Source: Schizochytrium sp. TIO01
Lineage: Eukaryota; Protista; Bigyra: Labyrinthulomycetes
Assembly: GCA_004764695.1 (NCBI GenBank)
Contig: SMSO01000005.1
Location: 1,426,001 to 1,490,000, forward strand
DNA: 64,000 bases
Direction: 5' to 3'
Position numbers and translations under genes: made by a program. The notes under the pieces were generated by a model, which had not been told where the DNA came from, did no database searches, and saw only the letters and a program-made list of their open reading frames with translations. Shown in pieces: positions 2,267-52,903 of the stretch (its first letter is position 1; each line of letters starts with the position of its first letter).

Positions 2267-2274
2267 CACTTGGT
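2267..2274. repeat. Left target-site duplication CACTTGGT
   Basis: Identical 8-mer at 8511-8518, immediately outside the right TIR. Confidence 0.92.
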
Positions 2275-5200
2275 GGCTCATCTGCCATGCTGACGTGAGC
2301 TCAAAAAAAAAACTCGCGGGGGGGGGAGAGAACATAGGAGAGAACAGGCGAAAATCTGGGGGGAAATTCTACTTTTCCTCACAAAATCATTGTGTTGGCG
2401 AGTTTTTTGATATGCATTTTATAAGATATATGGCTTTAACTGTGGGACGCGGCATGACATTTAGCTTTTAATTTAAAACTCTTTATGAATTTTGTTACTG
2501 GTTTTAGCAAGAACACTCAGTGATAATCTTCCTCTAATTCCACTGAAAATAATTAAGTGTATCACCACTGGGTCTCCTCACAAGGATGTTACATATTTCT
2601 GGTAAACTGGCACATCCACCTCAACGAATACTACGCCGACGTTTCACTGATGCAATTTAATACTGGACTTTGATGGTGGTTAAGCTCGTATTCCTTGGGC
2701 TCGAATACATGTGCAAAGAGACTTGGAAATATTCACTGGATGATCAGGGCATATTAAATGATACTTTGAGGTAGCGAAACTCAACAACGAGGTAAACATC
2801 AAACACGAAAATGATGCAATTTTCATCACGTTGCAAGCTTCGCCAGGCGACAGCCACTCCCGGGGACAATGATCAGGAATCCTTGAGTCATGAGGATATC
2901 AGAAAGGATCTGGAAGGCTTAAATGAAAGCGCTAATGTAGATGAGGAGAAGCGCGAGACTACGATCACCTTAATCCAACAAAAATTTATCGACAGCTGCA
3001 AAGACACACTTGATAAAATGGATATCAAAACATGCCAGTCCCTGTACGACATTGTTCCTGATGGGACAATCACTTGGCTCCAGAAACCCAAACTGCCGAA
3101 AGTAAAAAGAGGTCAACAAATTGCACCAGAGTACTTTCACCAGCGCAGCGTTGGGTTATGGCATCCAGCAAAAATGTATGCGTCGATGAACAATCGCATG
3201 CCATGTCCATACTGCAACCAAAAAGCGCATTTGGGTGAACCTCTTGTCAGCGTCTCTGGTGACGATGGCTTCTGGGCACCAAATTACCGAGAGATTGCTG
3301 GTGCGACTGCAAATTGGTTTCTCGTGGCTCGAAAGTATAAATGTAAAAAGTGCAATAAAGAGTTTCGCAATACAAGTGAGGATGTTCTTCGTTTGTGCCC
3401 TGCTGACGTACGGATACGCTTTGGCCTGACCTTAACCCCACGCCACGGGATTGAAACAGAGGTTAGCCAACGTCTCAGCCAATTGTGGTTGAAAAGTCCC
3501 GCGTGGGCTGCAGATGCTTTCAATGAGGCTCAGGTACGGAACCATAATCGTCTAGAGTACTTTTACTATGCATCAAGCTTAGGAGAACACACTCGGCGCT
3601 TCGATGAAGCTGGCCCCAATACAATCCCAAGTTTTTTTCAAAAGCAAGCAGTGAACTCGACAAATACGCTCAAATCTAAGATTCAATTCCAGCCCGAAAA
3701 ATGTTCTGCTGAGGTTTTGAGAAAGGAGACGGCTGCTCGTGAATTACTGGAATTTGATTTAAAGCAAATCAAGAGTTTGGGAGAAAAAAAGATTAAAATC
3801 CTAAAGTCTGCTCTCAATATCTCTACAGTTGTTGATGTCTTCCATGAGCTTAAGAACATCCTAGATACAAAAAACGGCGAGAAAATCAAGCAACTCAGCA
3901 CTGCTCGACGTGAGAGGGACCGAACGAGGGTTATAGAGGGTTGGAAAGAACTTTTGGAGACTACAATCAACCAGATACTCCGAGAAAAGGACTTACTGAG
4001 CGTGGAGTATGCTCGAATGGTTATCCAGCAGCGCAACGAGCGACTTGCCCGAGACAAGATCAATAAAGAATCTGCCGAGCAAGCAGCTGAGCAAGCGAGC
4101 AAACAGGTCGACCAGACAAATCAATCAGCATCGTGCTCAAATGAAGAAGAAACGCAAGAGAAATCAATCACGGCTCCTGAAAATTTTGGCAACTTCGACA
4201 TGGAGTACAACGGATATCGATTAAGCTCCAAATTTCTCGACGAATTATGTATTGACCAGTTTAAAGGAGAGGCAAGACCTTTGCTTCGCGAAATTGCGTC
4301 ATACAGCGCCAGGTATATCGCTATCGATTGCACGTTCCGGTTTCCCGAGCGCTGTAAACTTCGATTCCAAGACCAAGACAAATCCTTTAGGATATACCAG
4401 CCATATCAAGCCCTACTCACAATCAGTAACGAACACAACCAGATTATATTCTATTGTGGGTTGGCGAACAGTGAGAACGAGAGGGAAATAAGAGAAGCTT
4501 TAGGACGATTCGTCAAGCTACGCCAGGAAATGCATGGTCGGGATTACCGGCCTGAATGTATTTGGACAGATACATGTTGTGGAAAATTAAATAAATGCCT
4601 ATCACAAATTTTCAAGGGAGTCCCCATCAAGCTCGATTTGTTTCACTGGCTCAAGCGTTGGGAGCAAATAATGGTGAAAAGCAGCAACGAAAGCCGAGCA
4701 CCTCGTACTGCATTCATGACTGCATTAGCAAACGCTGTTCTTCAGCGCGACCACAAGCGAGTGAAGCAGGTTCAACAGGAACATAAGAGTAAGAGCAACT
4801 TCACAAAAGATCGGCTTATCAATCAAGCTGTTGAAACCCGAATCCCACAACCAGAGGTTCTATATAAGCGCATCATGGAAGTTTTTAAGACTCACTATAT
4901 TATGAACTCGAAGATGGATCTCAGTGCTGACCTGCTTCATCGCGTACGAGAGCGTTGCAAACCAAGATCTGGTAACGCTTGTGTAGAACATTTCGGACCC
5001 TATCCAAATGGGTTTCGGCATGGATTATTTTTATCTAAGACCGCCACAGGGGTTGGCCTAGACAAGTATATTGCAGGCCTTTTTGAACATGTTCATAAGG
5101 GCTGCTTGAGCGACCCTCCAGGTCTCGTTCTACAGACTAAAATCAATGGCAAAAATCATCTTGTGGGAAATAGAGGTACTAATGCAAATGAGGTGTTCCA

Positions 5201-8200
5201 TCGTATGTTGAACCAGGCTGTTGCAAGTGCTACCATTGGTATTGTTCGTGCTGACGCGCTACTCACCAAAGTGGTTGCTAAATACAATCGTTCCAGAATG
5301 ATTGAGATAAAAGGTTTACCTTCGTATTTAATTCACCAACCATTCAGCCACCACCTCACGATAAACTCCCTCGTCAATGATGCGTTCAATGGTAAAATCG
5401 AGCATAATGAGCTCCCTTATCCAGATGCACGACTGCCTTTGTGCGTTTCTCATGACTTACATATGGGATTCAGCATGATGCCAAGTGTTGGTTCTGTTTT
5501 GGAGTCTAATCATATAATGAGGACGCGAGCCACTGTGGTGCCGATTTTCTTCGACAGCACGGAGAACTCAACACTGGCGCATGCCGTAGAGCAAGCCATT
5601 GCTGTGATATTTGCCTTTGCAAAAGCTCTCGCACGACCAGAACATAAAAGAAAAGCCATAAGTTACCTCCAGAAAGTTCTTCGAAAACTAACGGGAGGAG
5701 GGGTACCCACCGAAACAGATCGATCAGTCCTCGACGAGGCTGGCATCGATAAAAAATTGAAAGACCACATCAGCTTGCGCCTGATAGCAATGAATATACT
5801 AGTAAACGGCAGCCTTTTCACTAAAGGAGAGAACGGTGACAAGCCTGAACCTCAAGGTGATATTGGTGTTCAGAGAGTCCTTTCAACTTGTGTAGAAATT
5901 CTTGAAGATTGTATAAGTACAGACTCTGATTCTGAGGAATTTAAAGAAAGGATCAAAATATCGTGCGTACAGTTAGAACCGCCTGAACACGAGGATGACC
6001 CAATATCAGAATTAGTGGTTGGTAGCTCAAACGCTGATATTCATCTGCACATTGGATGTTCTGTTCGAAAAAATATTACAAATCTTCCAAAAGCGCAGCT
6101 TGCTTCTGCGCCAAGGGTAAAAAAAGGCTTGTTCCCTGCCGAAGAGGCAAGGCCTGACCGTACCCGTTGGATTGCATTCTGTGAAGATCCTTTGCCAAAT
6201 CGATCTGGAACCTCTCTGACTGATGACGTCTCGTGGGAGAGAGTTCTCAGCGAAAATAGTGGGGATGATGCCGAGCAAACGGTGGAATGTAGGAAGAAGC
6301 AGCAGCAAGTACTGTCGGCATCTTATACAACTTGCGGCATAAAAGGCTCTGGTTGGGCCAGACCTCGCCCCAAGGACCTCATAGGAGCTAGCACGCCTTG
6401 CCCATTCAAAATGAAAGGTAAGCCCGAACAGCAGGACAAAGTGGAGCAAGACTTTTATTTATATCTTCTTAAAACCAAAAACTTCAATCGAAAAGCTGCG
6501 CCCATTCTGTCTAACAGCTTCGAAAGCTTTGCACAGTTGTGGAATCGATACGCTTGTCCTGCAGGGGATCTTGACGGTCTTTTCCTTCCGAAGCTTGATT
6601 CCGTGCAGATCTCTCATCCGGGCGACTTGAGGGAATATCTGAAACCAAAGACGGCGTTCCTACTCAGGCAATATGCAGATTTTCTGAATCAGAGAGATAG
6701 CATTTCTGCCAAAAATCGAAAACTAATGCTAGCGTCCAAGTTAGAGCACATGACTGAGCCATTGGTCGACGTACCTGTTACTGCAGATGGTGCTTTGGTG
6801 CATCCCTTGCATCTATTGGAAAGTATCAGAGAGCTGGACTATTCAACACGTTGCAATCTGGAAGCGAACATCATAAACGAAGAACTCCTCTCTCGGCATC
6901 CCTCTCTGGAACGATTTGACACAGCAGAGTTGAGGTCAATTATGACGAAGAACTTCCCCCTTGCACCTCAACAAACCTTTTTCCAATTCAAGCATTTGAA
7001 AAGTAAACGAAAGAGCATCTGGCGAGCTCCTGAAAATCTGAGCAAGTGCAAGTACTGTCAGTCTTGCTATGCACCAAGAGAAGGGCACCCCACGCCATTT
7101 GGCGCTGAGTGCAAACTTCAGACCTGCGAAGCAACAATTTCTGCCCTGGACAGTTTACCACCCACAGACTTTTTCGGGTCTGAAAAAAGAAGGGCTCAAG
7201 CGATAGCCCCTAAAGAACATACTGTAGATGTCCCCAAGGTTGGAAATGTACGCGGTGTCAAAATGCAACCAAGACAAGGAGGACCTGTGCGAACGTTTAA
7301 CTCAAAATGCACAGCGTTCTGGAAAGCTTCAGCAAAGGTGTTCAGTCTTCTGAAGAGCTCCATTTCTCCCAAGCACTCTGTTTTTACAAGTGGAAAACAC
7401 TTTGTTCATTCAAACAACATCACTATGAATCATACGTTTCTAGAGTTTGGCATGTGTCAAAGGCTGTTCTTAGACTCTCATGGGAACTTGCCATGCTCCG
7501 AATCAACTAACCCCGAATCTTTCGGGGAACCTTTATCATGGATGCAAGGGGATGCAATGGATGCATGGTGTGCTACCTGCTGCGAAGAAAATCGCGTTAT
7601 GAAGCCTGCAGAAAGAAAGAAGTGTCACGGAACCGCATTTGTACCTAGCACCGCACTTCAATTCCTCACAAGTTCGGTAGATGACCGACACGATTTGTTT
7701 ATATCGTCTGTATGCAATGCGATTGCAAATGCCACACCAAGAGGCCATTTTCAAAAGGACAGCTCCTCAACGAGGTCAATCTATATTCCAGATGTCATTG
7801 AATATGTTATGCTACCGTTTTGTACAGGAAGTCATTGGCAGCTTCTTTATTTTAACCAAAGGCAAGCGCGTGTTGTCTTTTACGACCCATTAAGTACCTT
7901 GCATGAACCGAGCCACGTGATGAAAGTATTTGGCGATGCCATCCGTCTTTTTGGAGCTGAAGACTGGGAGATCGAGATTAGGCGAGGCAACCAAAAAAAC
8001 GGTGTGGATTGCGGATATCACGTATCTACTCTAATGTATACTTTATGGCGTGGAGATGTAGCTGAAGAAGTTGCTCACCAGGAAATTCAAGATGAACATA
8101 TGAATGAAGTTTATCGTAGGGCATTTGCGATGGACATTGTTCGTGGAATCTGGAGGGTTTACAATATTTCATATTTACAGGTCTATTGGGCAGCCAGATC

Positions 8201-8510
8201 TGACGCAAGGGGGTCTACGCATTTAAATTTAATCTTAGCTGCGATCAAAAATCCCAACCAAGCAATGTCAAGTCAAAGTCAAGCTCAAGCGCCTCAGATT
8301 TCAGCGACTGAGTTTTCAAGTCAAGTCGCCGTTACTGTTAGCTAGACTCATATAATATATAAGAACTAAGAACAGAACACCGTTCCAGAACACCCTTGAG
8401 AACACTGTTCTAGAACACCAATGAGTCTCCCATATTAATTCATAGGCGTTCTAAGCGCGAGTTTTTTGCTCTTTTGGAAGAGAGACTTTTGTCAGCATGG
8501 CAGACGAGCC
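2275..8510 (+). mobile_element. Autonomous DNA transposon (DDE/DxxH class; Dada/Zisupton/KDZ-related) with 20-bp TIRs and 8-bp TSD
   Basis: Left end GGCTCATCTGCCATGCTGAC (2275-2294) matches the reverse complement of right end GTCAGCATGGCAGACGAGCC (8491-8510) at 19/20. CACTTGGT flanks both sides (2267-2274 and 8511-8518). The ends enclose one 1844-aa transposase ORF. Confidence 0.93.
2811..8345 (+). CDS. Transposase (N-terminal CxxC..CxxC Zn-finger, HhH motif, DDE core with DxxH) fused to a C-terminal Ulp1/C48 cysteine protease
   Basis: Uninterrupted 1844-aa ORF between the TIRs. Motifs: CPYC...CKKC; IAIDCT (D506), IWTDTCC (D587), LDLFH (D609/H612), GCLSDPP, RGTNANEVFH (E794); CKYCQSC..H..C cluster. 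Protease motifs: WMQGDAM, GSHW (H1675), FYDPL (D1692), QKNGVDCG (Q1728/C1734). Family assignment is from recalled motifs, not a search. Confidence 0.88.
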   Translation: MMQFSSRCKLRQATATPGDNDQESLSHEDIRKDLEGLNESANVDEEKRETTITLIQQKFIDSCKDTLDKMDIKTCQSLYDIVPDGTITWLQKPKLPKVKRGQQIAPEYFHQRSVGLWHPAKMYASMNNRMPCPYCNQKAHLGEPLVSVSGDDGFWAPNYREIAGATANWFLVARKYKCKKCNKEFRNTSEDVLRLCPADVRIRFGLTLTPRHGIETEVSQRLSQLWLKSPAWAADAFNEAQVRNHNRLEYFYYASSLGEHTRRFDEAGPNTIPSFFQKQAVNSTNTLKSKIQFQPEKCSAEVLRKETAARELLEFDLKQIKSLGEKKIKILKSALNISTVVDVFHELKNILDTKNGEKIKQLSTARRERDRTRVIEGWKELLETTINQILREKDLLSVEYARMVIQQRNERLARDKINKESAEQAAEQASKQVDQTNQSASCSNEEETQEKSITAPENFGNFDMEYNGYRLSSKFLDELCIDQFKGEARPLLREIASYSARYIAIDCTFRFPERCKLRFQDQDKSFRIYQPYQALLTISNEHNQIIFYCGLANSENEREIREALGRFVKLRQEMHGRDYRPECIWTDTCCGKLNKCLSQIFKGVPIKLDLFHWLKRWEQIMVKSSNESRAPRTAFMTALANAVLQRDHKRVKQVQQEHKSKSNFTKDRLINQAVETRIPQPEVLYKRIMEVFKTHYIMNSKMDLSADLLHRVRERCKPRSGNACVEHFGPYPNGFRHGLFLSKTATGVGLDKYIAGLFEHVHKGCLSDPPGLVLQTKINGKNHLVGNRGTNANEVFHRMLNQAVASATIGIVRADALLTKVVAKYNRSRMIEIKGLPSYLIHQPFSHHLTINSLVNDAFNGKIEHNELPYPDARLPLCVSHDLHMGFSMMPSVGSVLESNHIMRTRATVVPIFFDSTENSTLAHAVEQAIAVIFAFAKALARPEHKRKAISYLQKVLRKLTGGGVPTETDRSVLDEAGIDKKLKDHISLRLIAMNILVNGSLFTKGENGDKPEPQGDIGVQRVLSTCVEILEDCISTDSDSEEFKERIKISCVQLEPPEHEDDPISELVVGSSNADIHLHIGCSVRKNITNLPKAQLASAPRVKKGLFPAEEARPDRTRWIAFCEDPLPNRSGTSLTDDVSWERVLSENSGDDAEQTVECRKKQQQVLSASYTTCGIKGSGWARPRPKDLIGASTPCPFKMKGKPEQQDKVEQDFYLYLLKTKNFNRKAAPILSNSFESFAQLWNRYACPAGDLDGLFLPKLDSVQISHPGDLREYLKPKTAFLLRQYADFLNQRDSISAKNRKLMLASKLEHMTEPLVDVPVTADGALVHPLHLLESIRELDYSTRCNLEANIINEELLSRHPSLERFDTAELRSIMTKNFPLAPQQTFFQFKHLKSKRKSIWRAPENLSKCKYCQSCYAPREGHPTPFGAECKLQTCEATISALDSLPPTDFFGSEKRRAQAIAPKEHTVDVPKVGNVRGVKMQPRQGGPVRTFNSKCTAFWKASAKVFSLLKSSISPKHSVFTSGKHFVHSNNITMNHTFLEFGMCQRLFLDSHGNLPCSESTNPESFGEPLSWMQGDAMDAWCATCCEENRVMKPAERKKCHGTAFVPSTALQFLTSSVDDRHDLFISSVCNAIANATPRGHFQKDSSSTRSIYIPDVIEYVMLPFCTGSHWQLLYFNQRQARVVFYDPLSTLHEPSHVMKVFGDAIRLFGAEDWEIEIRRGNQKNGVDCGYHVSTLMYTLWRGDVAEEVAHQEIQDEHMNEVYRRAFAMDIVRGIWRVYNISYLQVYWAARSDARGSTHLNLILAAIKNPNQAMSSQSQAQAPQISATEFSSQVAVTVS

Positions 8511-8518
8511 CACTTGGT
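8511..8518. repeat. Right target-site duplication CACTTGGT
   Basis: Identical to 2267-2274. Confidence 0.92.
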
Positions 8519-51476: not shown

Positions 51477-52903
51477 GGCACATCTGCCATGCTGACGTGA
51501 GCTCAAAAAAAAACTCTCGGGGGGGGGGGGGGGAGGGAGAGAACATAGGAGAGAACAAGCGAAAATATGGAGGTAAATTCCTCTTCTCCTTACAAAAACA
51601 TTGTGTTGGCGAGTTTTCTGATGTGCATTTTATAGGTTAAATGGTGTTATATGTGGGACGTGATATAGCATTTAGCGTTAAATCCTAAGTCTTAATTAGT
51701 TTTGTTACTGGTTTTAGAAAGAATACACAGTGGTGACTCTCCTCTCTTTCCACTGAATATAATTAAGTCTACTGCTACTGGGTCTCCTCGCAAGGTATAT
51801 ACAATAGAGCTTTATAGTTGCACAATAACAATTGTTGTGTTTGTATATTTAAATTACACAGAAACAACAGCAGACTATTATTCTCAACAATTTGCGAACC
51901 TTGGCAAAGCGACTCAGGTTCCTGCGCTTGAACAATCAAAATGACGCGATATTAGACAAGTGAATGAAAGGCATTTTGGATAGAGAAGTATTTCTTAGTT
52001 TTGAGAGATCGATTTAAAGACTTAATCACTTCATAAATGAATAATCAACCAAGGAAAGCAAGCAATTTTGAGCATATTCTCATAACTTTTGGGACGAAGT
52101 AGGAGAAATGGTCTCAAGTTTAGAGTTACTCGATAACAACTAGTGCAAAACATCCACTCAACCCATCCAAACAGATTATTTGAGGTTCTTGCTTTATTTG
52201 CTTTACTACTTTTAAGTATTTTGACAAAGGAGCACCCTTAAAGATACTGATTCCTCTATAAATGACCATGTGTTTCACAGCAGCTTCTCAACTTCAGTTG
52301 ATATGAATATAATGTAGTCTCGGCATCATTTTGATCCTTATCTGTCATCCAAGTAGCCGGAGTATACTAGTATAGATCCTCGCATAAAGAGTTCGAAAGA
52401 TGAAAGATCATACTAGGAAAACATTAAAGTGGCATGAACTGAGGCTCCTCTGCATCGTTCTTGTGATTTTTTCAGATTCGATTTAGTAGTTGTGAGTGAA
52501 ATTTATAAAAGGAAAAGTTGGAAGCCTATATATATTGGCGTATCTCTATCTCATGGATTTGCTGATTGGAAAGTCTTAAAAATCTACAAATTAAGAAGTG
52601 CTACTATTTTGTTTGTGAACTCTTGAACTCTACATAGCAAATATTCAGTTATGTAAAGTAGAATGGGATAGATCTTAATGGTTTTGCTAGAACATCACAT
52701 GTATGAGTAAACTAGCCAGGGATGAAGAGGCCAAAATATCAAGTTGAACTGCTTGCAGAAATGACATGTTTGACTCTTGGTTGGTTTAGAACAGAACATT
52801 GTTATAGAACGTTCCATAATACTTCACACTAGCTCAGAATCGTTCTAAGCGCGAGCTTTCTCTCTTTTGGAAGAGAGCCTTTTGTCAGCTTGGCAGATGA
52901 GTG
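51477..52903 (+). mobile_element. Non-autonomous (MITE-like) derivative of the 2275-8510 transposon family
   Basis: 51477-51795 is clearly homologous to 2275-2585, and 52787-52903 to 8368-8510. TIRs are GGCACATCTGCCATGCTGAC / GTCAGCTTGGCAGATGAGTG. The interior has no long ORF and there is no intact TSD. Confidence 0.88.

Follow-up and report, generated by a model that had tools for sequence, protein, structure and literature searches.

The window analyzed here, a 64,000-nt stretch of Schizochytrium sp. TIO01 DNA (contig SMSO01000005.1), in all likelihood contains an autonomous cut-and-paste DNA transposon, mobile very recently, with a Dada-related DDE transposase (whole element, 6,236 bp; positions 2275 to 8510, forward strand). 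What is new, as far as sequence comparison indicates, is a lineage related to Dada whose ends are those of an ordinary transposon. It would belong in or beside the Dada superfamily without showing the 6–7-bp target site duplication (TSD), the absence of terminal inverted repeats (TIRs) or the insertion into small-RNA genes published for that group.

The original prediction, made from the DNA letters, had proposed a 19/20 TIR match, a perfect 8-bp TSD and an unbroken 1,844-aa ORF, and each of these was recovered. The left TIR, GGCTCATCTGCCATGCTGAC (20 nt; 2275 to 2294, forward strand), and the right TIR, GGCTCGTCTGCCATGCTGAC in its minus-strand reading (20 nt; 8491 to 8510), were complementary at 19 of 20 positions, and the sole mismatch, A/G at position 6, was identical in every copy. 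The two arms were directly abutted by the TSD CACTTGGT, at 2267 to 2274 on the left and at 8511 to 8518 on the right. When up to three mismatches were allowed, the TIR 20-mer was observed four times in the window, where 0.01 occurrences would be expected, and in the whole genome it occurred 42 times, compared to once for a reversed control. The ORF (2811 to 8345, forward strand), an intron-free transposase–protease fusion in an unbroken frame, was the only one of at least 150 aa between positions 1500 and 9500.

Five full-length copies were found in the genome. Over all 6,236 bp they did not differ in a single base, whereas the flanking sequences were only ~25% identical to one another, i.e., random. 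The TSDs of these five were all perfect 8-mers (AGACTTAT, GAGCAAAG, GTGAATCA, CACACATA and CACTTGGT), and a sixth copy, a 2,073-bp internal-deletion derivative, likewise had a perfect 8-bp TSD (TATTGAAG). Every copy began and ended precisely with the 20-nt TIR. TSD length was therefore 8 bp in six of six young insertions, no differing length was seen, and all six 8-mers were different, with no consensus common to them. Since identical copies stand in random flanks, each with its own perfect 8-bp TSD, the 8-mer is genuine and no coincidence. No strong target sequence preference was visible. It had also been predicted that the rejoined flank is not a small-RNA gene, and no tRNA or Rfam RNA gene was detected within 1.5 kb per side of the six insertions (0.7–1.5 kb for the deletion derivative). 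The single ORF at the rejoined site, of 84 codons, belonged to no known family, and we therefore claim no disrupted gene. The proposal of a recent, potentially active insertion is consistent with these data, in that five identical copies in unrelated flanks suggest that the element was mobile very recently, an activity that we infer from copy identity alone. An older, non-autonomous relative of 1,427 bp with the same ends (51477 to 52903, forward strand; TIRs 19/20 and 17/20 to the consensus) had no TSD left, and recognizable TSDs were not found for older same-TIR relatives elsewhere in the genome; the combination of TIRs and an 8-bp TSD is established for one young family only.

From the N to the C terminus, the protein is predicted to comprise a CCCC finger within DUF6729, a coiled-coil linker, a DDE core with a helical insertion, a CCHC finger and an Ulp1 domain. 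The DUF6729 match (aa 88–221; 3072 to 3473, forward strand; Pfam E 9e-9, 35.7 bits, cut-off 27) enclosed the CCCC zinc finger (C132, C135, C177 and C180). The RNase H-like core and its helical insertion (aa 502–858; 4314 to 5384, forward strand) contained D506, D587, D609xxH612 and E794, residues put forward at the outset as putatively catalytic. In an alignment of 28 homologues these fell in invariant or near-invariant columns, D587, C589, C590, H612 and W613 being invariant and D609 and E794 near-invariant. An AlphaFold2 model of the core (pLDDT 79, pTM 0.78) had an RNase H-like strand order, and its best Foldseek matches were ISCth4 (IS256 family; E 8e-5, probability 1.00), the P element transposase and Hermes; a profile search against PDB sequences returned no significant match. 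The model thus supports the notion that the region between DUF6729 and Ulp1 is an RNase H-like DDE domain, closest to the IS256, P and hAT transposases. Further downstream, a candidate CCHC zinc finger (C1416, C1419, H1426 and C1433; 7056 to 7109, forward strand) was partially conserved, its CxxC being present in eight of eight aligned relatives, the His in three of eight and the last Cys in four of eight.

A SUMO-type protease had been proposed, and an Ulp1/Peptidase_C48 match near the C terminus (aa 1663–1773; 7797 to 8129, forward strand) was indeed found above the curated Pfam cut-off (PF02902, E 8e-9, 36 bits, cut-off 20.7). H1675, D1692, Q1728 and C1734 aligned with the Ulp1-like protease structure 6dg4 and with relatives; the His-Asp-Cys triad and oxyanion Gln characteristic of the papain-like Ulp1/SENP proteases were all present, suggesting that the domain is catalytically complete in its residues. 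DUF6729, the core and C48 also occurred together in two paralogues of the same genome (35–37% identity; open frames of 1,912 and 1,848 residues), and the combination was kept in the metagenomic proteins P0005, P0009 and P0011. Because the fusion recurs in paralogues this divergent and in several metagenomic relatives, it appears to be old in the element's branch. Neither Dada paper, Kojima and Jurka 2013 (PMC3706591) or Kojima 2022 (PMC8869645), mentions a protease, and a literature search found no paper describing a Dada element with Ulp1. An Ulp1 protease also accompanies the transposase of Ginger1 (PMC2836005), another cut-and-paste group, whose DDE transposase is in contrast Gypsy-integrase-like (rve) and unrelated at the sequence level to the one described here.

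A HMMER search against 1.84 billion proteins yielded 238 relatives; of two earlier word-index protein searches, one gave a single match and the other none, and a metagenome scan found no relative. Five relatives (P0066, P0084, P0094, P0131 and P0089) combined DUF6729 (E down to 1e-22) with DNA_pol_A_exo1, and P0146, a gene call without its N terminus, showed the exonuclease only. The element was ~25–30% identical to the exonuclease-bearing proteins. The element grouped with its paralogues and with P0005, P0009 and P0013 in one clade of the core tree (support 0.87–0.92), and in this unrooted tree their clade stood apart from the exonuclease-bearing, Dada-like clade. We also searched for the termini of paralogous families B, C and D, and the candidates were set aside: inverted repeats built on exact seeds seemed to be due to chance, the boundaries did not agree between copies or were truncated, and the candidate family-B terminus was rare in the genome.

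The view that the core is Dada/DUF6729-like, offered in the original prediction, agrees with three lines of evidence, namely the Pfam match, the architecture of distant matches (23–37% identity) and motifs compared by eye with the published alignment. A DUF6729-type transposase with a 3'-5' exonuclease insertion has been described for the fungal and brown-algal elements Dada-1_LB and Dada-1_ES (PMC3706591), and the exonuclease-bearing relatives match this architecture. The blocks FxWxP..CP.C...YxC..C, LDxFH, GC(L/I)SDPPG and RGTNxxE..H are also found in Dataset S1 of PMC3706591. In common with Dada, the element has a DDE core with DxxH, an N-terminal CCCC finger (DUF6729) and a GC(L/I)SDP...RGT(N/S)xxE..H block, together with a candidate for the C-terminal CCHC finger that is a Dada feature (PMC3706591). 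Its size is within the 4.7–11 kb range, and it is intron-free, as are the Perkinsus Dada families. The ends, however, are unlike Dada, as had been anticipated. Published Dada elements have TSDs of 6–7 bp, no TIRs and only 9-bp subterminal repeats, and they target U6, U1, tRNA or 5S genes (PMC3706591; PMC8869645), whereas this element has 20-nt TIRs and an 8-bp TSD in its six young insertions and its insertion sites are unrelated to one another, none having an RNA gene within 0.7–1.5 kb of flank. Neither paper reports TIRs or accepts 8 bp as a TSD length, and the Ulp1 domain is absent from both descriptions, in line with the idea of a possibly undescribed lineage. In contrast to Dada-1_LB and Dada-1_ES, the element has no exonuclease insertion. 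The animal families that target small-RNA genes were not among the scored matches, so that the lineage could be sister to Dada and not inside it.

These differences bear on whether the element represents a separate, unnamed superfamily, with only the DUF6729 front end and a distant core similarity in common with Dada. The TSD length, the TIRs and the absent target specificity all depart from the published Dada diagnosis, and the position of the clade in the core tree and the low identity to the exonuclease-bearing proteins point the same way. However, TSD length varies within superfamilies, e.g., among hAT5, hAT6 and hAT7 (PMC12730594). The whole protein plan, from the CCCC finger through DDE plus DxxH and the GCLSDP...RGT..E..H block to the candidate CCHC finger, fits published Dada, and we regard a separate superfamily as unlikely.

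Mutator-like elements (MULEs) have TSDs of 8–11 bp, TIRs, a C/DxxH signature and an IS256-like fold. The 8-bp TSD and the best structural match, to ISCth4 (structures 6xg8/6xgx), with which the element shares an RNase H-like core plus insertion domain and the C/DxxH signature, would suit a very divergent MULE, and some MULEs carry Ulp1 (PMC2528002). We nevertheless consider this reading improbable. Pfam gave no match at E values up to 1 to MULE, Transposase_mut or any other model related to MuDR, the signature of the element is DxxH and not CxxH, and its TIRs are short (20 nt). Features of Dada, by contrast, are the DUF6729 finger at its front end, the GCLSDPPG/RGTNxxE block and the candidate CCHC finger in its C-terminal part. 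Moreover, Dada itself is reported to be distantly similar to MuDR and IS256 (PMC3706591), so an IS256-like fold match is expected either way.

Membership in the Zisupton/KDZ (Kyakuja-Dileera-Zisupton) group seems more doubtful still: the protein had no KDZ (PF18758) or CxC match at E values up to 1, its N terminus is DUF6729, its core motifs agree with the Dada alignment in the literature, and its relatives carry the Dada-type exonuclease insertion. KDZ was not matched genome-wide either, a weak blank, as control genomes gave none. The element does contain an Ulp1 domain, and Zisupton was reportedly described with a SUMO-protease domain by Boehne et al. in 2012; a literature search found no paper joining Zisupton with Ulp1. 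TIRs and 8-bp TSDs are common to both (PMC12730594). Finally, the copies might be read as members of a host gene family or as products of segmental duplication, given the long intact ORF and the occurrence of a related DUF6729 protein of 830 aa (P0004/P0152) in transcriptome data. This reading can practically be dismissed: sequence identity breaks off precisely at the TIRs, the flanks of different copies are unrelated (~25% identity), every copy is bordered by a separate 8-bp direct duplication, and there are deletion derivatives as well as non-autonomous relatives that share these termini.

Returning to a Dada-related transposon, we tentatively suggest, as a possibility that is far from favored, that the clade, in this reading combining DUF6729, a DDE core and a fused Ulp1 with true TIRs, TSDs of 8 bp and a lack of target preference, represents the ordinary, ancestral Dada form or a sister superfamily; the TIR-less, small-RNA-targeting Dada elements of animals and Perkinsus would then be derived, the fused deSUMOylase would contribute functionally to transposition or help the element to evade host silencing, and the element would still be jumping, in this case in a culturable, transformable industrial protist. 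Dada is among the least studied eukaryotic DNA-transposon superfamilies, and nearly all that is known of it concerns elements that insert strictly into small-RNA genes. An element of this kind with conventional termini is clean material for biochemical work: its 20-nt TIRs are defined, its ORF lacks introns and its catalytic residues are clear. Its comparison with targeted Dada families could reveal the part of the protein that confers target choice. The element also ties the uncharacterized Pfam family DUF6729 to a transposase, provides a further example, independent of the others, of a transposase accompanied by a SUMO-type protease, and may offer a native tool for insertional mutagenesis in thraustochytrids.

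In the mechanism that we propose, the transposase would bind the 20-nt TIRs, and perhaps also subterminal AGAACA motifs, excise the element and link the 3' ends of the element to the target DNA at positions staggered by 8 bp; repair of this stagger would leave the 8-bp duplication. For the protease, we speculate that its probable substrate is SUMO, or a modifier resembling SUMO, on proteins of the host or the element, and that it serves, for example, to counter SUMO-dependent silencing or to regulate the transposase. The subterminal (G)AGAACA motifs are possible transposase-binding sites, occurring twice near the 5' end (2329 to 2346, forward strand), with a third at 2510. Near the 3' end, a motif scan located a cluster of five forward AGAACA motifs and one reverse (8369 to 8417, forward strand). 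The motifs have the same orientation at both ends of the element, an arrangement atypical for binding sites.

The element, a 6,236-bp transposon at 2275-8510, begins with a left terminal inverted repeat (TIR; GGCTCATCTGCCATGCTGAC, 2275-2294) and ends with a right TIR that reads GTCAGCATGGCAGACGAGCC on the window strand (8491-8510), and copies of the target-site duplication (TSD) CACTTGGT abut it at 2267-2274 and 8511-8518. A repeat finder reported the arms as a 20-nt inverted repeat with 95% complementarity, i.e., the 19/20 match of the original prediction. With up to three mismatches allowed, the window contains four matches to the TIR 20-mer where 0.01 would be expected, and TIR-like 20-mers numbered 42 genome-wide versus one for a reversed control. 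The predicted unbroken 1,844-aa frame was recovered at 2811-8345 as the sole long ORF of the region. Directly inside the left TIR (2295-2330), an A10 run is followed by a G-rich run (GGGGGGGGAGAGAACA), a feature that recurs at 51497-51535 in a diverged relative. Eight of 13 forward AGAACA motifs lie within 240 bp of either element end, in the same orientation at both; any role for them in transposition is speculative.

A search of the genome that the window comes from (64 Mb in 37 contigs) returned five full-length matches at 100% identity, together with truncated copies and one 98% copy. By script, all 6,236 bases were the same in the five full-length copies, and their flanks (292 bases each side) agreed from copy to copy at ~25%, the random level. 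The identity of the full-length copies implies a very recent spread. Each of the five was bordered by its own perfect 8-bp direct repeat abutting the TIRs (AGACTTAT, GAGCAAAG, GTGAATCA, CACACATA and, in the window, CACTTGGT), as was a derivative at C34:3980596-3982668 that internal deletion has shortened to 2,073 bp (TATTGAAG). A perfect 8-bp TSD in 6/6 insertions is far beyond chance, and the concern that other copies might show other TSD lengths, rendering the predicted 8-mer coincidental, did not materialize. No target consensus was found among the six sites, and no Rfam family or tRNA in the six loci, where flanks reached 1.5 kb per side, or 0.7-1.5 kb in the case of the deletion derivative. 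The rejoined target in the window holds only an 84-codon ORF without a known match; we make no claim of gene disruption there.

Within the 1,844-aa protein, Pfam placed DUF6729 at aa 88-221 with 35.7 bits (cut-off 27) and Peptidase_C48 at aa 1663-1773 with 36 bits (cut-off 20.7); none of its transposase families matched, even with E relaxed to 1. Two word-index searches came back almost empty; a subsequent HMMER search with aa 80-900 gave 238 proteins at E ≤ 1e-3 (80 at E ≤ 1e-10), all of them distant (23-37% identity). A metagenome scan for relatives of the protein found nothing, and its best named homologues were from Hondaea fermentalgiana. In a 28-sequence core alignment, numbered on the whole protein, D587, C589, C590, H612, W613, P679, L766 and P769 were invariant, D609, F611, R616, H760, C765, S767, D768 and E794 were near-invariant, and D506 sat within a conserved IDxxF strand, so that every catalytic residue originally proposed falls at a conserved position. 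An AlphaFold2 model built on this alignment (pLDDT 79, pTM 0.78) has an RNase H-like strand-helix order, with a long helical insertion ahead of the helix bearing E794. Foldseek against the PDB placed the IS256-family transposase ISCth4 on top (E 8e-5, probability 1.00, TM 0.40-0.49), with the transposase of the Drosophila P element and then Hermes (hAT) behind it. IS256, P and hAT are also the relatives named for Dada (PMC3706591). The predicted SUMO-type protease likewise held up: the C-terminal domain could be aligned to a solved Ulp1-like protease, with His1675, Asp1692, Gln1728 and Cys1734 retained. In a CxxC...H...C finger at residues 1416-1433, CxxC was kept in 8/8 aligned relatives, and the His and last Cys only in some.

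Dada transposases combine a DDE triad with DxxH, an N-terminal CCCC finger and a C-terminal CCHC finger, and those of Laccaria and Ectocarpus carry a DEDDy 3'-5' exonuclease inserted past the second D (PMC3706591). Five of the distant relatives (P0066, P0084, P0094, P0131 and P0089) gave strong DUF6729 matches (down to 1e-22) together with DNA_pol_A_exo1, and a sixth, P0146, whose gene call is without the N-terminus, gave the exonuclease only. In their source records, some exonuclease-bearing relatives go under the names "3'-5' exonuclease" or "ribonuclease D", and the organisms named for them were Plasmodiophora, Amoeboaphelidium and Blyttiomyces. In the published alignment (Dataset S1 of PMC3706591), Dada-1_LB, Dada-2_LB, Dada-1_ES and later entries share the blocks FYWDP..CP..C...YRC..C, (L/K)D(I/P)(F/W)H, (C/Q)(L/I)SDP(P/H)G and RGT(N/S)xxE...H, to which, matched by eye, VGLWHP..MPCPYC...YKCKKC, LDLFHW, GCLSDPPG and RGTNANEVFH correspond in the element. 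Because of the Pfam match, the exonuclease architecture of the distant relatives and these shared blocks, we place the transposase with Dada, as its core had originally suggested. A Kyakuja-Dileera-Zisupton model matched neither the protein nor the genome, the latter result carrying little weight since control genomes were equally blank.

Unlike published Dada elements, which have 6-7-bp TSDs, are without TIRs and insert into U6, U1, tRNA or 5S genes (PMC3706591, PMC8869645), and for which neither paper describes a protease, the element has real TIRs, 8-bp TSDs, mutually unrelated targets and an Ulp1/Peptidase_C48 protease; its ends thus do behave as atypically as first proposed. These differences could be taken to mark a separate new superfamily, which we consider improbable. 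Termini could be defined only for those Dada elements that sit in RNA genes (PMC3706591), so the ends of non-targeted families have simply gone undescribed, and TSD length differs inside other superfamilies, e.g., among hAT5, hAT6 and hAT7 (PMC12730594). We therefore read the element as a variant lineage, which falls short of proving a new superfamily. By analogy with established hAT/P/MULE-group DDE cut-and-paste transposases, its transposase would bind the element ends, excise the element and, through a stagger of 8 bp, insert it elsewhere; for the deSUMOylase-like domain, any role is speculative.

Ulp1 domains also accompany MULEs (PMC2528002) and Ginger1 elements (PMC2836005). Two more lineages in the genome, 35-37% identical to the element and with long open frames, contain both DUF6729 and C48. 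One has an intact 1,912-residue frame (C24:917271-923006, in L037, C24:915000-924999) and a second copy (L038, C30:5881000-5890999) that is 95% identical over 6.1 kb; the two share an abrupt 5' boundary. A possible 3' terminus reads ...GGTGAGCGCCCC, and no matching left end was found. The other has a 1,848-residue frame (C34:596716-602259, in L032, C34:593000-602999) and several ~2.3-kb internal-deletion derivatives (L039-L044; 73-92% identity), with termini that disagree from copy to copy. Among the distant relatives, metagenomic P0005 and P0011 contain DUF6729 and C48 by Pfam, and a local Ulp1 HMM located the protease domain in P0009, P0035 and P0061 as well. A midpoint-rooted FastTree of 88 cores (336 match columns, after removal of redundant cluster members and of rows below 60% coverage) grouped the element and both paralogous families with P0005, P0009 and P0013 in one clade (support 0.87-0.92), apart from the exonuclease-bearing clade (0.94) and from a large clade with P0011, P0035 and P0061. 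Because many relatives come from truncated gene calls, a missing Ulp1 says little in those cases. On these distributions, the protease is old in the element's branch. P0061 (NCBI MFK7809473.1), which combines the transposase core with Ulp1, comes from a 5.2-kb contig and carries the title "MAG: Ulp1 family isopeptidase [Saprospiraceae bacterium]"; the contig is probably that of a eukaryotic transposon, binned into a bacterial MAG.

Other sequences share only parts of the element. At 51477-52903 lies a 1,427-bp non-autonomous relative (left TIR 19/20 and right TIR 17/20 to consensus), whose 5' 311 bp are ~81% identical to the element and whose interior is unrelated; no TSD is left in this or the other older relatives sharing the element's ends. 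More than 25 genomic places (e.g., L013-L030) match the first ~311 bp only, at 70-86% identity, and repeats of this part far outnumber those of the 3' end, representing either an old non-autonomous family or a conserved cis region. A fourth DUF6729 family (L053, C6:1104500-1114499; L054, C24:5366500-5376499) has a 1,583-aa ORF and no Ulp1 or exonuclease by Pfam. Its two copies, 98.6% identical, carry tandem repeats of 102 bp at the 5' end, and no TIR was seen. Only one copy has a possible 7-bp duplication, GGCTGCC, which would resemble classical Dada. Finally, an 830-aa DUF6729 protein (P0004/P0152; C3:1624286-1625284) is 33% identical to the N-terminal third of the element's protein, in a match without the catalytic core; it occurs in an MMETSP transcriptome and may be an expressed relative that was truncated or domesticated.
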